The notes beneath the pieces are model-generated. The model worked only from the letters and a program-made list of their open reading frames with translations, had not been told where the DNA came from and did no database searches. A program made the position numbers and the translations under genes. Positions 24,801 to 31,000 of a stretch of DNA of 50,678 nt are shown here, in pieces. Origin of the DNA: Parasitella parasitica NRRL 2501 (taxonomy: Eukaryota > Fungi > Mucoromycota); NCBI GenBank assembly GCA_025201805.1, contig MU619319.1, positions 1 through 50,678 on the forward strand, in the 5' to 3' direction. The first letter of the stretch is position 1. Each line of letters begins with the position of its first letter.

Positions 24801-25773
24801 GGAGGTTCAAGAAGGCGAATTGCGAATGTATTCGCTCCAGCCTGGCCAAAATCAGCTAGGAGACAAGAGCCTTTTCCGTCATTCCAGCGCTACTCATTTC
24901 AGTTCACTTGATGTTCATAGCGGCAACAGGCTATCTAGTCGTCCTTCAAGTCCTGCATCGTTTGGCGGTGTTTTTGCAAACACTAGCACCCATAGTAAGT
25001 GGGGAGCCCATTCACAGCTAGTCGGAAAGATCATTTTGAATCATACCCTCTCGAACCCTCTTCCACCGCCCGGCTACAACAAACAACGCCCTCATGTGTT
25101 TGCTATACAGCAATCAGATGGTGGCGTCTATCTTTTCCAAGTGTCTGGTGCAGAGGAAGCGCTTGAATGGGTTTCCGCTTGTAATTATTGGGCTGCACGG
25201 GAGAGTAAGGAGCCATTGTCCGGCGGTGTGGGTAATACAGAGTACGGCTGGGGCGCCTGTCTCAATGATGTTGTTGTGGATTTGGATGCTGTACGTATAG
25301 GCTATGATCAAAAGGTAAATTACGTTCCCACCGAGGATCCCGACTCCATTGTGATAAACGAATGGATACCACCGACGGCAACAATGGTGTCAAGTCAGCT
25401 GGATGAAAAAGCTCAGTATGATGCCCTGCAGAAGCACCTGGCTGAACTGAATGAAGAAATCAACCAACATCGTGATATCAAGAATAAAATAATAATCAAA
25501 GTATTTACAAAAGAGTTCAATGCGGAAAAATCGTAATATATTTACTGACTACATCATCCTCTATAGTTTCCTACAAAATGCAACAACTATTCAAAAGCAA
25601 TTTCTAACTGGGAAGCAAGATCCAAGTATCTATTACATGACATTATCAAATATCAAAATTATTGCGATTCTCTGGAGAAAAGCATAAAATCACAGCAGGA
25701 TCTTTTAAAAGAAGAAGACATTGAATCAAAGCATGATTTCTTACAGGACGTTATCGGCGTGAGAGATATATAG
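21821..25773 (+). CDS. Sec7 + PH domain Arf-GEF (Syt1/Yel1/EFA6-like); 6 exons
   Basis: Sec7 motifs LYFKAEAQQIDRILESFA and YSLLLLNTDLH. PH domain YKEG...REWRECYLEV...RPHVFAI...YLFQ...EWVSACNYWAA. C-terminal coiled coil. GT-AG introns; stop at 25771-25773. Confidence 0.9.
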
Positions 25774-26371
25774 ACCCAAGTCAACAATAATATCCCAAAG
25801 ATTAAATTCTAGAGCATCTCATACCTTGTATCTTTTAGTTGACAATTGATTAAAAAATTATAACCTATTGCTTTAGGTCTTTTTTTTTATATATAAATAC
25901 TAAACACGACGTAATGGCTTTGCCAAAGCATCAATTTTTCGTTGGCCTTGATTTTATATGATTTGGATAGACACTTTTTGATGTTGCGTTTAGTATATGC
26001 TCCGAATTCAACTAAATATAAAGACTTCAGAAATCAGCTCTAGTTCAACAAAAATGATATAAATGATAGCTTTGTAAACAATCTTTCGACATGAATTATT
26101 ATTTTTTGGTTCGTAGCTATCAAATAATGCATATAACCATGAAACTAACAATAGCATTAAAAGTATTCACTTTCAATGCTTGTATATATTATATATTTAA
26201 AACTAATTCACTCGGGAAAACCACATAAACTTTTTCTTAATAATTACTCACAGTTAAAGAAGTGGTATAATGGCTCAACCGCCAAGCACTACAAAAAAAA
26301 AAAAAAAAAAAAATAAAAAAAATTAGTTTCAACAAGCAATCAAATCATTTTGGTATTGAGATAATTGTTTA

Positions 26372-27615
26372 GGTTTATTGTAATCAAGTGCCCTCCCCTC
26401 CTTCATGACAGCTTACAAAGATTGTTAGATGCCGGGTGCACTTGTTCAGCCTACACAGTATCATAACTAAAAAAAAATATTTTATTTCCTTCAAGTAAAA
26501 ATGCAAAAAAGTCGAAAACCTTCCTAATTCAGAAAGTAATAACTGAATATTTCCCAACATTTGAGACAGTAAAATTAAATCCTGACTTGCCACGAAATCT
26601 CGTTATTATTAAAGCCCTGAAGTTAGAAATCATGTATAAACCTTCACATTTTCGATTTATTCTATTAAAAAACAATACATATCAACCATTATTTAGCTTG
26701 TTAATAATGTGTCAACTATGTCATTCGCTTTTAATGGTCGCAAAAGACGCCTTATTGCTATTAATGATGAAGAAGAACAAATGTTAGATCAGTCGTGAGT
26801 CTTGCGGACAAATCAGCACTTGAACAGCCAATTTACTTTCATGATGCATGCACTCAACAACAATCATAACCAAGAAGTTATGCATAATTCTCGCCACAAT
26901 TCCCTGTTAAATGCAATGTCTTTTTAGTTACATCAGCAAAATCGACGACTAAAGACAAAACAACAACGAGACATAATCCAAACATTGAAAACAAGCCAGA
27001 GATTCCTCAAATCGCAGCTACAGCTTGCTTTGGCAGGCTTGGGATTAAATTGAGAATTTGGACCAACAAAGGTAAAAACTGGTTGCAAACACGACATCCC
27101 ATCCAAAACTAGCAAGTTTTCTTTTCTTAGCTTTATTGTACGCCTGCCGCCAAACATGAAGTTCAAAACAAAAACACTTGGAATGTTATATTGCAGGCTC
27201 AACTATCATCAATCCTCCGGCTTCGTTACTAAAGCCATCCATTGGGCTTCGAAGCAAAGTCCAGACATCCAAAGAGAAAGCAGATTACTGGAGTGCCAAT
27301 GCTTTCAAGTCAATGTGCCGCGACCAAGTCTCCGCACTTGCAATTGGTCTTACTGGTGTTGGTTGCCTTTTGTTTGGAGTAACTTTCCCCTGCTTCGACC
27401 CAAACCCCACCTCTGCCAAGCGCACACAATTCAACAATTTAGCCCTATCTTTTTTGTACAGAAAACAGATACTGGGCTCGCCTTTCGATGGAGGCAATAC
27501 TCTTTGAAGGTTAGTAAACAAATATAAAACGTGGAGATAACTCAATATTAATCGAGCGCTGCATCTTTGACTTTGACCTTTTAATACTATTGGGTAAGTG
27601 ACATTCCCACTTATA
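26372..27615 (+). mobile_element. Putative non-autonomous Fanzor1 (TnpB-derived) element with 9-bp TSD
   Basis: Direct repeat AATTGTTTA at 26363-26371 and 27616-27624. The element starts GG and contains a Fanzor-like pseudo-ORF and a structured 3' end. Confidence 0.55.
26718..27507 (+). pseudogene. Internally deleted Fanzor1-like nuclease; 3 exons (26718-26877, 26928-27071, 27131-27507)
   Basis: Phase-consistent exons. N-terminal MSFAFNGRKRR. C-terminal CRDQVSALAIGLTGVGCLLFGVTFPCFDP resembles the RuvC-III 'RDxxSAxAI' end of TnpB/Fanzor. In-frame stops at 26796 and 27157. First donor reads TT instead of GT. Confidence 0.65.
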
Positions 27616-27635
27616 AATTGTTTATAAAAAGTAAC
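27470..27635 (+). ncRNA. Putative Fanzor omega-RNA (scaffold plus flank-derived guide)
   Basis: Hairpin GCCTTT/GGAGGC, long-range stem AAGGTTAGT/ACTTTGACCTT, and a terminal pseudoknot-like GGG-T-AAGT-GACATT-CCC-ACTT just before the repeat. Confidence 0.5.
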
Positions 27636-28015
27636 CAAAATCATCTGTTTCTTCTTTCGGAATTTAGCTTGATATACGGATACAGTATCAAGGTTTGACG
27701 TAATGGCCCAAGCGCAGTTCTATAAACAGCCGAGCTGTATTTTCTTATGGGAAAAAACACGCCCAATGTTACTCGGATCAAGTCATCATGGCAATCAGAT
27801 GGTTCATTTCATCATATGTTTATATGACGGAAAAATTTGAGTGATCTGCACGAGAAACTCACACACACACATTGCGAATTGTGCCTGAATCATCTTTGAA
27901 GGATTATGTGGCTCATTTGATCCCCAAGTCAGTAGATAAGACAGAAGCAAACAAAACCGTGTGACTCTGTCATTGTTTCTTCTTTCCTCTTTTCTTTCTT
28001 ACTCAAGGCGTCTAA

Positions 28016-31000
28016 ATGGTATCTGCCATAGTGGACAATGATGCGGATTGGCAGAACTGTCAGAATTATTCATTCTGTACAAAACCTTTGGAAAAACCTG
28101 CAAACGATGATCGTGATTATCGTTTAATTAAGCTGTTAAATCAGATGGAAGTCCTGGTCATCAGTGATCCTCAGACTGATCGTGCAAGTGCCGCTTTAGA
28201 CGTCCATGTGGGCAGTTTGAGCGATCCGGTAAGTGCATACTTGTCATAATTTTCATCAGTGGCATTTAGTAGTTTTTGATAAACTAGGAACACTTGCAAG
28301 GCTTGGCTCATTTTTGCGAGCATCTGTTGTTTATGGGGACCAAAAAATACCCAAAGGAGAACGACTACTACAGCTACCTCTCAGAGCATTCAGGTACAAG
28401 ATAAATTCTACTTGCTTCTTGCATATAACTAACAGAATACGCTAGGTTATGCGAATGCCTTTACTGGCACAGAGAACACTAACTACTTTTTTGAGGTGGG
28501 GCATCAGTGGCTCGAAGGTGCATTAGATCGCTTTTCACATTTTTTCATTGATCCACTCTTTTCTGAAAGTTGTACAGACAGAGAACTTAGAGCTGTGGAT
28601 TCAGAGCATAAAAAGAACCTTCAATCAGACTGCTGGCGCATTGCCCAGGTGGAAAAATGCCTCAGCAACCCAGATCATCCATGGCATTTGTTCGAAACTG
28701 GTAACCTCGAGACATTGATGGAGAATCCCAAGAAACTGGGCCTTGATATTCGTCAAGAACTACTAAAATTTCACGAAAACTACTATTCTGCAAATATTAT
28801 GAAGCTTACGGTCATTGGCAGAGGTAGGTTCTTATGCTTATAAAATACTAGATCATCCATGCATCCATCATTCACACAAACATATCAGAACCGTTGGATC
28901 AATTGACAGAATGGGCTGTTGAAAAGTTTTCAAGCGTTACAGACAAGAATATCCCTGTGCCATCTTTTCCAGGACACCCATTGACTAGAAATGAACTCAT
29001 GACGCAAATCTTTGTGAAATCAGTAAAGAAAAATCATACGTTTGATATCACTTTTCCATTCCCAGATCAGAATCCCTACTATGAGAGCCAGGTAAGTGTG
29101 GATATATGCGTTCGTAGGCCTAGATTCTCATTGTTTGCCCGTGCAGCCTGCTCATTACATCTCTCATCTAACTGGCCACGAAGGTCCTGGGTCTATTCTA
29201 TCTTTTCTTAAAAAGAAGAACTGGGCTACCTATTTGAGCTCGGGCATGTGTTTTAGTGGCATTGGATTTGGCTTCTTTCACATCGGTATTGATTTAACAG
29301 AACAAGGCCTAGGTAAAAGATCGAGAGTAGACTTTGCATGCGGTATTTTATTGGATTAACATGGATTTTCATAGCTCATTATGAAGATGTGGTGGTTGCT
29401 ATTTTCGAATACATTGAAATGGTAAAGGAAAATGGTGTAAAGAAGTGGATTTTTGATGAGATCAAAACATTAGCAGAGATGGATTTCAAGTTTTCCGACA
29501 AGTGCCCTCCCTCTGAGTACACTTCATTTTTGTCACAACAAATGCAGGAATGTTTGCCTCCTCAATGGACCATTAGTGGAAGTGCTTTGCTGAGAAAATA
29601 CGACCCTGCCCTTATAGAGCAGCATTTAGCGTTACTTGATCCTGAAAACTTTCGCTTGACTCTTGCCTGCCAAGAATTTCCAAATGGCGTGCAACCAACC
29701 AAGGTTGAAAAATGGTATTCAACAGATTATGAAGTGCTTCCTCTCAGCAAAGAATTGATGTCTGTAAGTTTATCAGTGGCTGTGGAAGTTTTGTGATGGA
29801 TACTGATGTCCCCTGTGCTAGAGATTGGCTCATATTTCAATGAACGATGAGTTCTGCTTACCTGCTATCAACGAGTTCATCCCGTCTAATCTCGATGTAA
29901 ATGTAACCGGTGGCTCCACCAAGAAAGTTCAACCTGAATTGATCAAAGACACACCCATAACACGTATCTGGTACAAAAAGGATGACACTTTTTGGGTTCC
30001 CAAGACCAATGTATGGGCTACCTTTAAAAACCCCTTGCTTCTTGCTACACCTCGGAACTCTGTCATCTTGGAGTAAGTAACATATCCTAAACAGTAGTAA
30101 ATCTGCAAGTTTTTTTTATATATATTTATATATGTGTGTATATTTTTTTATTCTGTAGTCTTTATATCAGTTTACTGACAGATTCTCTCTCTGAGTATTC
30201 CTACGATGCAGAAGTTGCTGGTTTGGTTTATTTTCTCAGTCAAGGATCTAAGGGTTTCACCGTAAATATTTCTAACAATCACTGACGAGATGTCTTGGCT
30301 AACACCTTTGCCTAGCTTCAAGTTGGTGGCTACACTGATAAACTACCTTTATTGCTAGAGAAAGTCATTGATAAGATGAGGGACCTTCAGATTGAGACGG
30401 ATAGATTTACTATCTTCAAAGACAAACTTACTCGTGGTTACGAAAACTTTTTTTTGGGAGCGCCTCACCAGCATTCTGCCTATTACATGACATATGCACT
30501 CTGTGAAAAACGTTGGACTATTGGTGATTTCTTGGCCGAGATCAAAGATATTCATATGGAGGATGTTCAAACGTTTATCCCTACTCTTTTTTCCAGTCTG
30601 CACATTGAAAGCTTAGTCCACGGTACATTGGAGCAAGGCCAAGTAGTCGATATGTTTGACCAAATGTTGAAAGTGCTGCAACCTCGTCCTCTTATGCCCA
30701 GTCAGTTTATTGGCGAGCGCTCTGTTCTTCTTCCGACAGGCACCAAGTTTGTCTATGCCCGTCCTGTGTCTGATAAGGATAACGTTAATTCTGCCATCAA
30801 TTACCATGCTCAAATCTGCAATGTCAAGGATATACCTCTTCGTAATCGCCTCAGTATTATAGCGCAGATCGCTGAAGAGCCTTGCTTTAATCAACTTCGT
30901 ACCAGAGAACAATTGGGTTACTTGGTATTTAGTGGTGTTCGTCGCCAGCTGAGTCAAATGGCATTCCATTTGATCATCCAGAGTGAGCGAGACCCTATAT

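Follow-up and report, generated by a model that had tools for sequence, protein, structure and literature searches.

The locus and its repeat unit

The window analysed here, a stretch of 50,678 nucleotides from contig MU619319.1 of the fungus Parasitella parasitica NRRL 2501, contains a Sec7/PH-domain gene, with an mRNA contig that stops at 25814, and downstream of it a gene for an M16 peptidase (STE23-like), with a transcript that begins near 28007. Between them, about 320 bp upstream of the peptidase transcript start, lies a real repeat unit of 1,234 bp at 26455-27688, which is a copy, non-autonomous and reduced by an internal deletion, of a DNA element encoding Fanzor1, a eukaryotic RNA-guided nuclease. 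The features of the locus are:

26363-26371, + strand: first copy of AATTGTTTA, a chance match in the unique intergenic sequence that flanks the element, 84 bp from its 5′ end
26455-27688, + strand: the repeat unit, 1,234 bp (homology limits, 54 genome matches)
26455-26461, + strand: ACAGTAT of the left terminus, preceding CATAACT and poly(A) (aligned left ends)
26462-27155, + strand: 5′ leader, about 700 bp upstream of the family start codon, lacking 13 bp that other copies carry after the poly(A) run (5′-end alignment, map of open reading frames (ORFs) in the consensus)
27156-27297, + strand: start codon and about 47 first Fanzor codons (copy alignment)
27297-27298, + strand: internal deletion junction (copy alignments)
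27298-27507, + strand: last 70 Fanzor1 codons, the RuvC-III Arg-Asp codons being 27319-27324 and the stop 27505-27507 (ORF, profile alignment to SpuFz1)
27440-27500, + strand: a pair of neighbouring hairpins within the terminal part of the coding sequence, a candidate guide-RNA scaffold
27510-27685, + strand: putative intron, GTTAGT...ACAG, beginning 2 nt past the stop codon and finishing 3 nt short of the right end (splice-signal conservation)
27616-27624, + strand: second copy of AATTGTTTA, internal to the element, exact or with one substitution in 16/17 aligned copies (alignments of 13-17 copies)
27656-27688, + strand: right end, family consensus ...TTAGCTTGMTATWCCGTTACAGTAT, where the window copy has GGA for CGT at two positions; unrelated flank beyond in every copy

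Searching the genome with 26372-27615 returned 54 matches on many contigs at 78-98% identity, and with a query extended into the flanks the homology with eight other copies ran on to 27688, beginning near 26455-26470. Aligned left ends (n = 11) start with (A)CAGTATCATAACT and a poly(A) run, the sequence upstream being unrelated between copies, and aligned right ends (n = 17) terminate in ...CCGTTACAGTAT before passing into unrelated flank. The family left end reads ACAGTATCATAACT...; a genome-wide search with patterns for the two ends gave 23 left-end and 30 right-end matches, and control patterns gave 0. The sole terminal symmetry is a 7-bp direct repeat, ACAGTAT, identical at both termini in nearly all copies, which in the window copy happens to reach 9 bp (ACAGTATCA, at 26455-26463 and 27682-27690). 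A repeat scan over about 1.34 kb around the element detected no terminal inverted repeats (TIRs) involving its ends, as the first-pass annotation of this DNA had also reported, and the consensus ends are unrelated in reverse complement.

That annotation had drawn the element differently, as a 1,244-bp mini-Fanzor at 26372-27615 mobilised by a MuDR/Mutator transposase and bounded by a 9-bp target-site duplication (TSD), AATTGTTTA. The exact 9-mer is indeed present at 26363-26371 and 27616-27624, and the segment between the two begins with GG as described. The copies nevertheless place the limits of homology at 26455 and 27688 and not at the 9-mers: family homology starts 83 bp inside the proposed left border and ends 73 bp beyond the right one. 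Because the second 9-mer is internal and conserved among copies, it is not a target-site duplication. The annotation itself allowed that an AT-rich 9-mer can recur by chance. This one has 5 occurrences in the window against 1.9 expected, a count that 5/100 shuffles reach, and eight other direct-repeat families of at least 9 nt occur within the same 1.34 kb; the AATTGTTTA pair is therefore not above chance. Nor is there, at the limit of homology, the 9-10-bp TSD differing from copy to copy that a MuDR element would have, since the abutting sequence is the same 7-mer in nearly all copies. The lack of TIRs and of a variable 9-bp duplication, with a constant 7-bp direct repeat at the ends instead, rules out carriage by MuDR, and for all the exactness of the 9-mer the borders and mobilisation first proposed are almost certainly wrong.

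An internal deletion shared with other loci

The two halves of the window copy (26470-27297 and 27296-27688) lie about 3.1-3.3 kb apart at many loci, and paired ends are 4.4-4.6 kb apart at C9, C28, C40, C55, C25 and C29. The interior of these full-length members is one long gene, in broken pieces, with 1-2 introns and an encoded protein of about 1,100-1,200 amino acids. We built a rough majority-rule DNA consensus of the family, used for reading frames and as a BLAST query, and its open frames are 508, 440 and about 260 codons long, one intron being clear. Full-length copies have a C-terminal ORF that reads ...VGDRGHG...ITNEHNTSQTC..C...C....C...CRDQVSALAIGL and also shows ...PIMFVGDRGHG...ITNEHNTSQTCVFCFHKL...CLNPECPNAFKTMCRDQVSALAIGL..., and an upstream exon carries FSGTDNG. 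Full-length copies elsewhere in the genome had been anticipated by the first-pass annotation and do exist, annotated only as hypothetical proteins without Pfam domains; the named database matches are entries of the form 'hypothetical protein BD408DRAFT_...' of Parasitella parasitica.

Alignment with three other copies (L021, L024 and L027) showed that the deletion in the window copy spans codon ~47 to the last 70 codons. The junction joins ...GGAGTGCC (27297) to AATGC... (27298), with GAATGCC microhomology at the break, and the two parts are fused in frame. The loss amounts to about 3.3 kb of coding sequence and takes in the WED, REC, RuvC-I, Ealt and zinc-finger regions, so that of the complete RuvC triad and zinc finger expected of a Fanzor1 only the RD motif is left. 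What the copy retains is both ends, the 700-bp leader, the ~47 first codons, the last 70 codons from the RD motif onward and a 181-nt 3′ tail. The ORF once described as a spliced pseudo-ORF is one continuous frame created by the deletion at 27297|27298, and the peptide attributed to it, ...CRDQVSALAIGLTGVGCLLFGVTFPCFD, is encoded in the ORF at 27178-27507, although that ORF ends in ...GGNTL* at 27507 rather than in ...PCFD. An extra base at about 27169-27175 shifts the ATG at 27156 out of frame, other copies lacking 1 nt at 27169, and with its start codon frameshifted the window copy cannot make a nuclease.

The identical junction occurs at C81, C70, C17, C83:101396, C131 and C99, where the flanks are unrelated. 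The same deletion at six or more other loci with unrelated flanks indicates that this derivative was mobilised by machinery acting in trans. The deletion and the family members thus bear out the earlier proposal of a non-autonomous derivative of a Fanzor-encoding element.

Several further deleted forms are present in the genome, with mini sizes between paired ends of 2,284, 1,234, 1,095 and 533 bp. In a sister copy with the same deletion as the window copy (L027, C81:134826-136059) the ATG is in frame with the fused ORF, and a mini protein of about 117 amino acids made of the N- and C-terminal Fanzor ends is possible. A second deletion subfamily has been amplified as well, with interior positions ~249 and ~2521 joined at 8 or more loci (C122:55433-56379, C62, C8:341086-341979, C61, C173, C32, C77 and C7). 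The 533-bp mini (L030:516-1047, which is C55:102015-102547 on the minus strand) has its left end fused directly to the zinc-finger region, and the C90 locus is another mini.

The deleted gene encodes a Fanzor1

For identity searches the pieces of the ORF were used separately as queries. An exhaustive search with the 292-residue C-terminal ORF returned 407 homologues, mostly fragments, with some of 700-1,080 amino acids. A profile of 44 homologues (A1) had as its top PDB match SpuFz1 (8GKH; E = 6.2e-7 over 236 residues), with Cas12f next, and a second profile (A3) matched the same SpuFz1 entry at E = 1e-8 over 235 amino acids. The match to SpuFz1 covers the RuvC-III 'RD' motif; the C-terminal peptide singled out in the first-pass annotation is the RuvC-III end of a Fanzor1, as was proposed. 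PF07282 is the only recurrent Pfam family among the profile members (10/44), and residues E186, C193, C225 and R234 are retained in at least 90% of the 44 homologues. One homologue, P0027 (713 amino acids), is collinear with the element over 700 residues; in a Foldseek search its AlphaFold2 model (predicted local distance difference test score 74) gave SpuFz, PpFz, GtFz, Cas12f, other Cas12 proteins and TnpB as the best folds, and the model of this homologue shows the bilobed arrangement of WED/REC and RuvC/TNB.

The published Fanzor1 motif is D-x(125,275)-[TS][TS]-x-x-C4 zinc finger-x(5,50)-RD (Bao & Jurka 2013), and full-length copies conform to it, its [TS][TS]xx-C4-RD part included, reading GTDNG ... 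NTSQTCVFC ... CLNPEC ... CRD. Fanzors also carry an alternative RuvC-II glutamate, Ealt, six residues before the zinc finger (Yoon et al. 2023); here N-E-HNTSQT-C places six residues between the E and the first Cys. Both GTDNG and the Ealt motif agree with those printed for MCi-6 to MCi-10 in the Bao & Jurka supplement.

Several observations weigh against this assignment. Taken singly, the sequences gave PF07282 at E = 0.024, below the cut-off, or no Pfam family at all, and a single-sequence PDB search returned nothing relevant and did not reach SpuFz1; since single sequences failed, profiles were needed. The fold evidence comes from the 25-36% identical homologue P0027 rather than from the element's own protein. 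A DPG at RuvC-I is described as a near-exclusive Fanzor fingerprint (PMC10711439), and the family and its homologues have GTDNG, keeping the catalytic Asp with N for P; nine Mucorales-type Fanzor1 sequences in the 2013 supplement share the DNG motif (Bao & Jurka), which makes it a known variant and not an exclusion. None of the resolved full-length copies has an intact reading frame, and the five youngest-looking full-length copies are nearly all N gaps, so that an active master copy is at most hypothetical. Finally, no empty site was found, the insertion being present in all three DNA runs (X2, X4 and X6), and ACAGTAT may be either target sequence that was duplicated or sequence of the element itself; the right-end/flank junction in these runs has 0 differences from the window, and the runs are therefore of the same or near-identical strains.

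With these points included, we put at roughly 0.9 the probability that the window copy is a deleted, non-autonomous copy of a 4.4-4.6-kb P. parasitica element whose sole gene is a giant Mucorales 'MCi-8-like' Fanzor1.

The five gapped copies (L049-L053: C40:137393-141870, C9:382858-387333, C28:162178-166698, C55:127951-132563 and C25:61433-65993) have the best-preserved ends around 3.8-4.0 kb of N, and any intact master copy would be hidden there.

Mobilisation of the family

The mobilising enzyme would not be encoded in the element and would act on its short identical ends, through a Crypton-like or serine-recombinase-like exchange or through a transposase with a fixed target. Besides MuDR, three classes were rejected: the ends do not fit the TC...CTRR of Helitrons, the two ends do not form a pair of long direct repeats as in a long terminal repeat (LTR) element, and the 3′ poly(A) of a non-LTR element is absent. 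We favour a process driven in trans, with either a short identical core as the site of exchange or a fixed target as the site of insertion.

In the first of these forms, a Crypton-like tyrosine or IS607-like serine recombinase acting in trans would exchange a circular junction with a target at an ACAGTAT core, producing no duplication and leaving one ACAGTAT derived from the target. TIRs are absent and nearly all copies carry one and the same 7-mer at either end, which conforms to Crypton-like termini, Cryptons having short terminal direct repeats, and part of a Crypton recombinase is present in MCi-2A, a Fanzor element of Mucor (PMC3627910). End variants are also unmirrored between the left and right of one copy, although at 3-13% divergence these may equally be later mutations. 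Against such an exchange, no full-length copy contains a recombinase gene, only the Fanzor gene, and we entertain it tentatively. The GCR1_C domain occurs in fungal Cryptons. The genome has 20 matches to this domain that pass the Pfam cut-off, several of them lying within open frames of 570-930 amino acids (for example C40:224008-224232 and C175:20160-20399), and these may be Crypton-type elements.

In the second form, a DDE transposase from elsewhere, for example of the Harbinger type as for Mucor MCi-5, would have a strong preference for ACAGTAT as target, insert the element there and duplicate the 7-mer. MCi-5 offers a precedent as a Fanzor1 element without TIRs, with a constant 6-bp 'TSD' (ATTTAT) and a Harbinger transposase at some loci (PMC3627910), and the P. 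parasitica family has the same architecture, a constant short repeat followed by CAT.... DDE elements normally require TIRs, however, and none are present; the copies contain no transposase gene, and a fixed target of 7 bp is unusual, all of which makes this form doubtful.

A partner transposase or recombinase gene with the same ends was not found at loci that share one end only, all of which are stubs. Left-end matches at C10, C38 and C8 are stubs of 75-160 bp beside host genes or an unrelated DDE_3 gene, and C193 has a 28-bp right-end stub. The stubs at L054:91-163, L055:88-163, L056:8849-8922 and L061:52-79 (28-160 bp) adjoin SPT23/MGA2-like, aldehyde dehydrogenase or DDE_3 transposase genes and are truncated relics.

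The 3′ tail and a possible guide RNA

The kept 3′ part is the region in which a Fanzor omega RNA would arise, and minis of this kind could still yield guide RNA. The first-pass annotation had described a structured non-coding tail downstream of the ORF; the fold stability of the 3′ tail is nothing unusual (z = -0.36), and RNAalifold found no covariation among 13 copies, which are too alike to expect any. An Rfam scan over 25500-28100 returned nothing at E<=1 and a tRNA scan found none. The best-conserved part is instead the hairpin region at 27440-27500, with a substitution fraction of 0.016 compared with 0.037 and 4% gaps in the downstream tail, whose interior tolerates deletions among copies.

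The tail has splice signals near both of its limits, with the donor GTTAGT (27510) kept in 11/13 copies and the acceptor ACAG (27682-27685) in 13/13. An RNA contig from the 533-bp C55:102015-102547 mini, which is transcribed into its flank, shows the equivalent of the 27510 donor spliced to an AG that lies 2 nt outside the right end, which is mutated in that copy (ACTATAT). These contigs come from run X7, in which the flanking genes appear spliced, identifying it as RNA, and other family RNA contigs in this run also continue past the right end into flanks. It is conceivable, though unlikely, that the 3′ tail is a spliceosomal intron whose removal abuts the hairpin scaffold with flanking host DNA and so finishes a guide RNA, the minis then being guide-only satellites. 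If true, the spliced tail would be a new way of making guide RNA.

A more specific version would have the window copy itself function as such a satellite, its 3′ part transcribed into the flank and the 27510-27685 intron removed, supplying omega RNA to full-length Fanzors elsewhere. The conserved, scaffold-like coding end, the retained donor and acceptor, the C55 mini spliced from the same donor and the family contigs that pass the right end are all consistent with this. Yet run X7 contains no RNA contig specific to the window copy, with depth 0 over its right flank at 27731-27952, and the RNA contigs that fall on the element differ from the window copy at 7/149 letters. Neither the fold z-score nor covariation gives a structural signal, and the resolved full-length copies offer no intact nuclease gene for such a guide to serve. 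A functional role for the window copy is accordingly improbable.

Neighbouring sequence

Beyond the element, spliced RNA contigs confirmed GT..AG introns at 25501-25566 in the Sec7/PH gene and at 28228-28286 and 28392-28443 in the M16 peptidase gene. At the A-run at 26283-26329 (about 23 A, T, 8 A) every DNA contig of the three runs breaks. The sequence before this run is faintly tRNA-like and was negative in ARAGORN and Rfam; the A-run may be an old retroposon tail. The window copy is an ordinary dead transposon relic in the promoter region of the M16 peptidase gene.

Comparison with known Fanzor systems

Among solved structures, the best profile match is SpuFz1 of Spizellomyces punctatus (PDB 8GKH; Saito et al. 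2023), covering RuvC-II, the zinc finger and RuvC-III, and SpuFz1 is also the top fold match of the modelled homologue P0027. SpuFz1 is a protein of about 630 amino acids carried by an element of the Mariner type that has TIRs and a TA TSD, whereas the P. parasitica family has an N-terminal extension of about 500 amino acids, reads DNG for DPG and lacks TIRs. A Fanzor of the P. parasitica genome itself, PpFz1 (PDB 9CF0-9CF3; Xu et al. 2024), belongs to the same fold class (Foldseek E = 4e-5 with the P0027 model), but it represents a different family: the C-terminal ORF has no PDB sequence match and the profiles fall short of PpFz1. Sharing a species with a structurally solved Fanzor makes comparative experiments feasible.

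Like the P. parasitica elements, ROr-4 and PBl-3, together with MCi-4, come from Mucorales, carry Fanzor1 on about 4.5 kb and lack a transposase gene. They are of the MuDR type, with MuDR-like TIRs of 31-42 bp and variable 9-bp TSDs, and the P. parasitica family has neither. MCi-5 is nearer in architecture, having no TIRs, a constant short end repeat (ATTTAT there, ACAGTAT in P. parasitica) followed by CAT at the 5′ end, and a protein of about 1,200 amino acids; it differs in its length of 7.3 kb and in the Harbinger transposase at three loci, the P. parasitica family showing no transposase gene.

At its 3′ end MCi-5 has ACAGTAT 9 nt before the terminal ATTTAT, and the printed DNA of MCi-6 (Bao & Jurka 2013, Additional file 2) holds the reverse complement of ACAGTATCATAACT, the left end of the P. 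parasitica family. End sequences may be common to different genera.

The closest published relative of the family is MCi-8 of Mucor circinelloides, a Fanzor1 of 1,067 amino acids in 2 exons, represented by one copy whose ends were not determined (Bao & Jurka 2013, Mob DNA 4:12). The whole-protein match was judged by eye from the printed supplement and not computed; it includes ...MARLQYTTN..MWS..TI.NKLL.., AGTDNGIVKTTETVYFDIERF, PIMFIGDRGHG, ITNEYNSSQTC and CPNAF.S.CRDQVSALAIGLAGLSQLLFGAAFPCFD. Giant Fanzor1 proteins of 1,067-1,375 amino acids were listed for Mucor in the same work, so this kind of element has been known since 2013. The suggestion of an uncharacterised Fanzor family in the first-pass annotation therefore holds for the P. 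parasitica family itself but not for its kind, which was published then with the same motifs and with MCi-8 as the nearest member. In contrast to MCi-8, the P. parasitica family numbers dozens of copies, its ends are defined, and several of its deletion derivatives have been amplified. It thus supplies defined ends and many copies for the giant Fanzor1 lineage, and describes Fanzor elements that lack TIRs, carry a constant 7-bp terminal repeat and have spread mainly as internal-deletion minis keeping the putative guide-RNA region.

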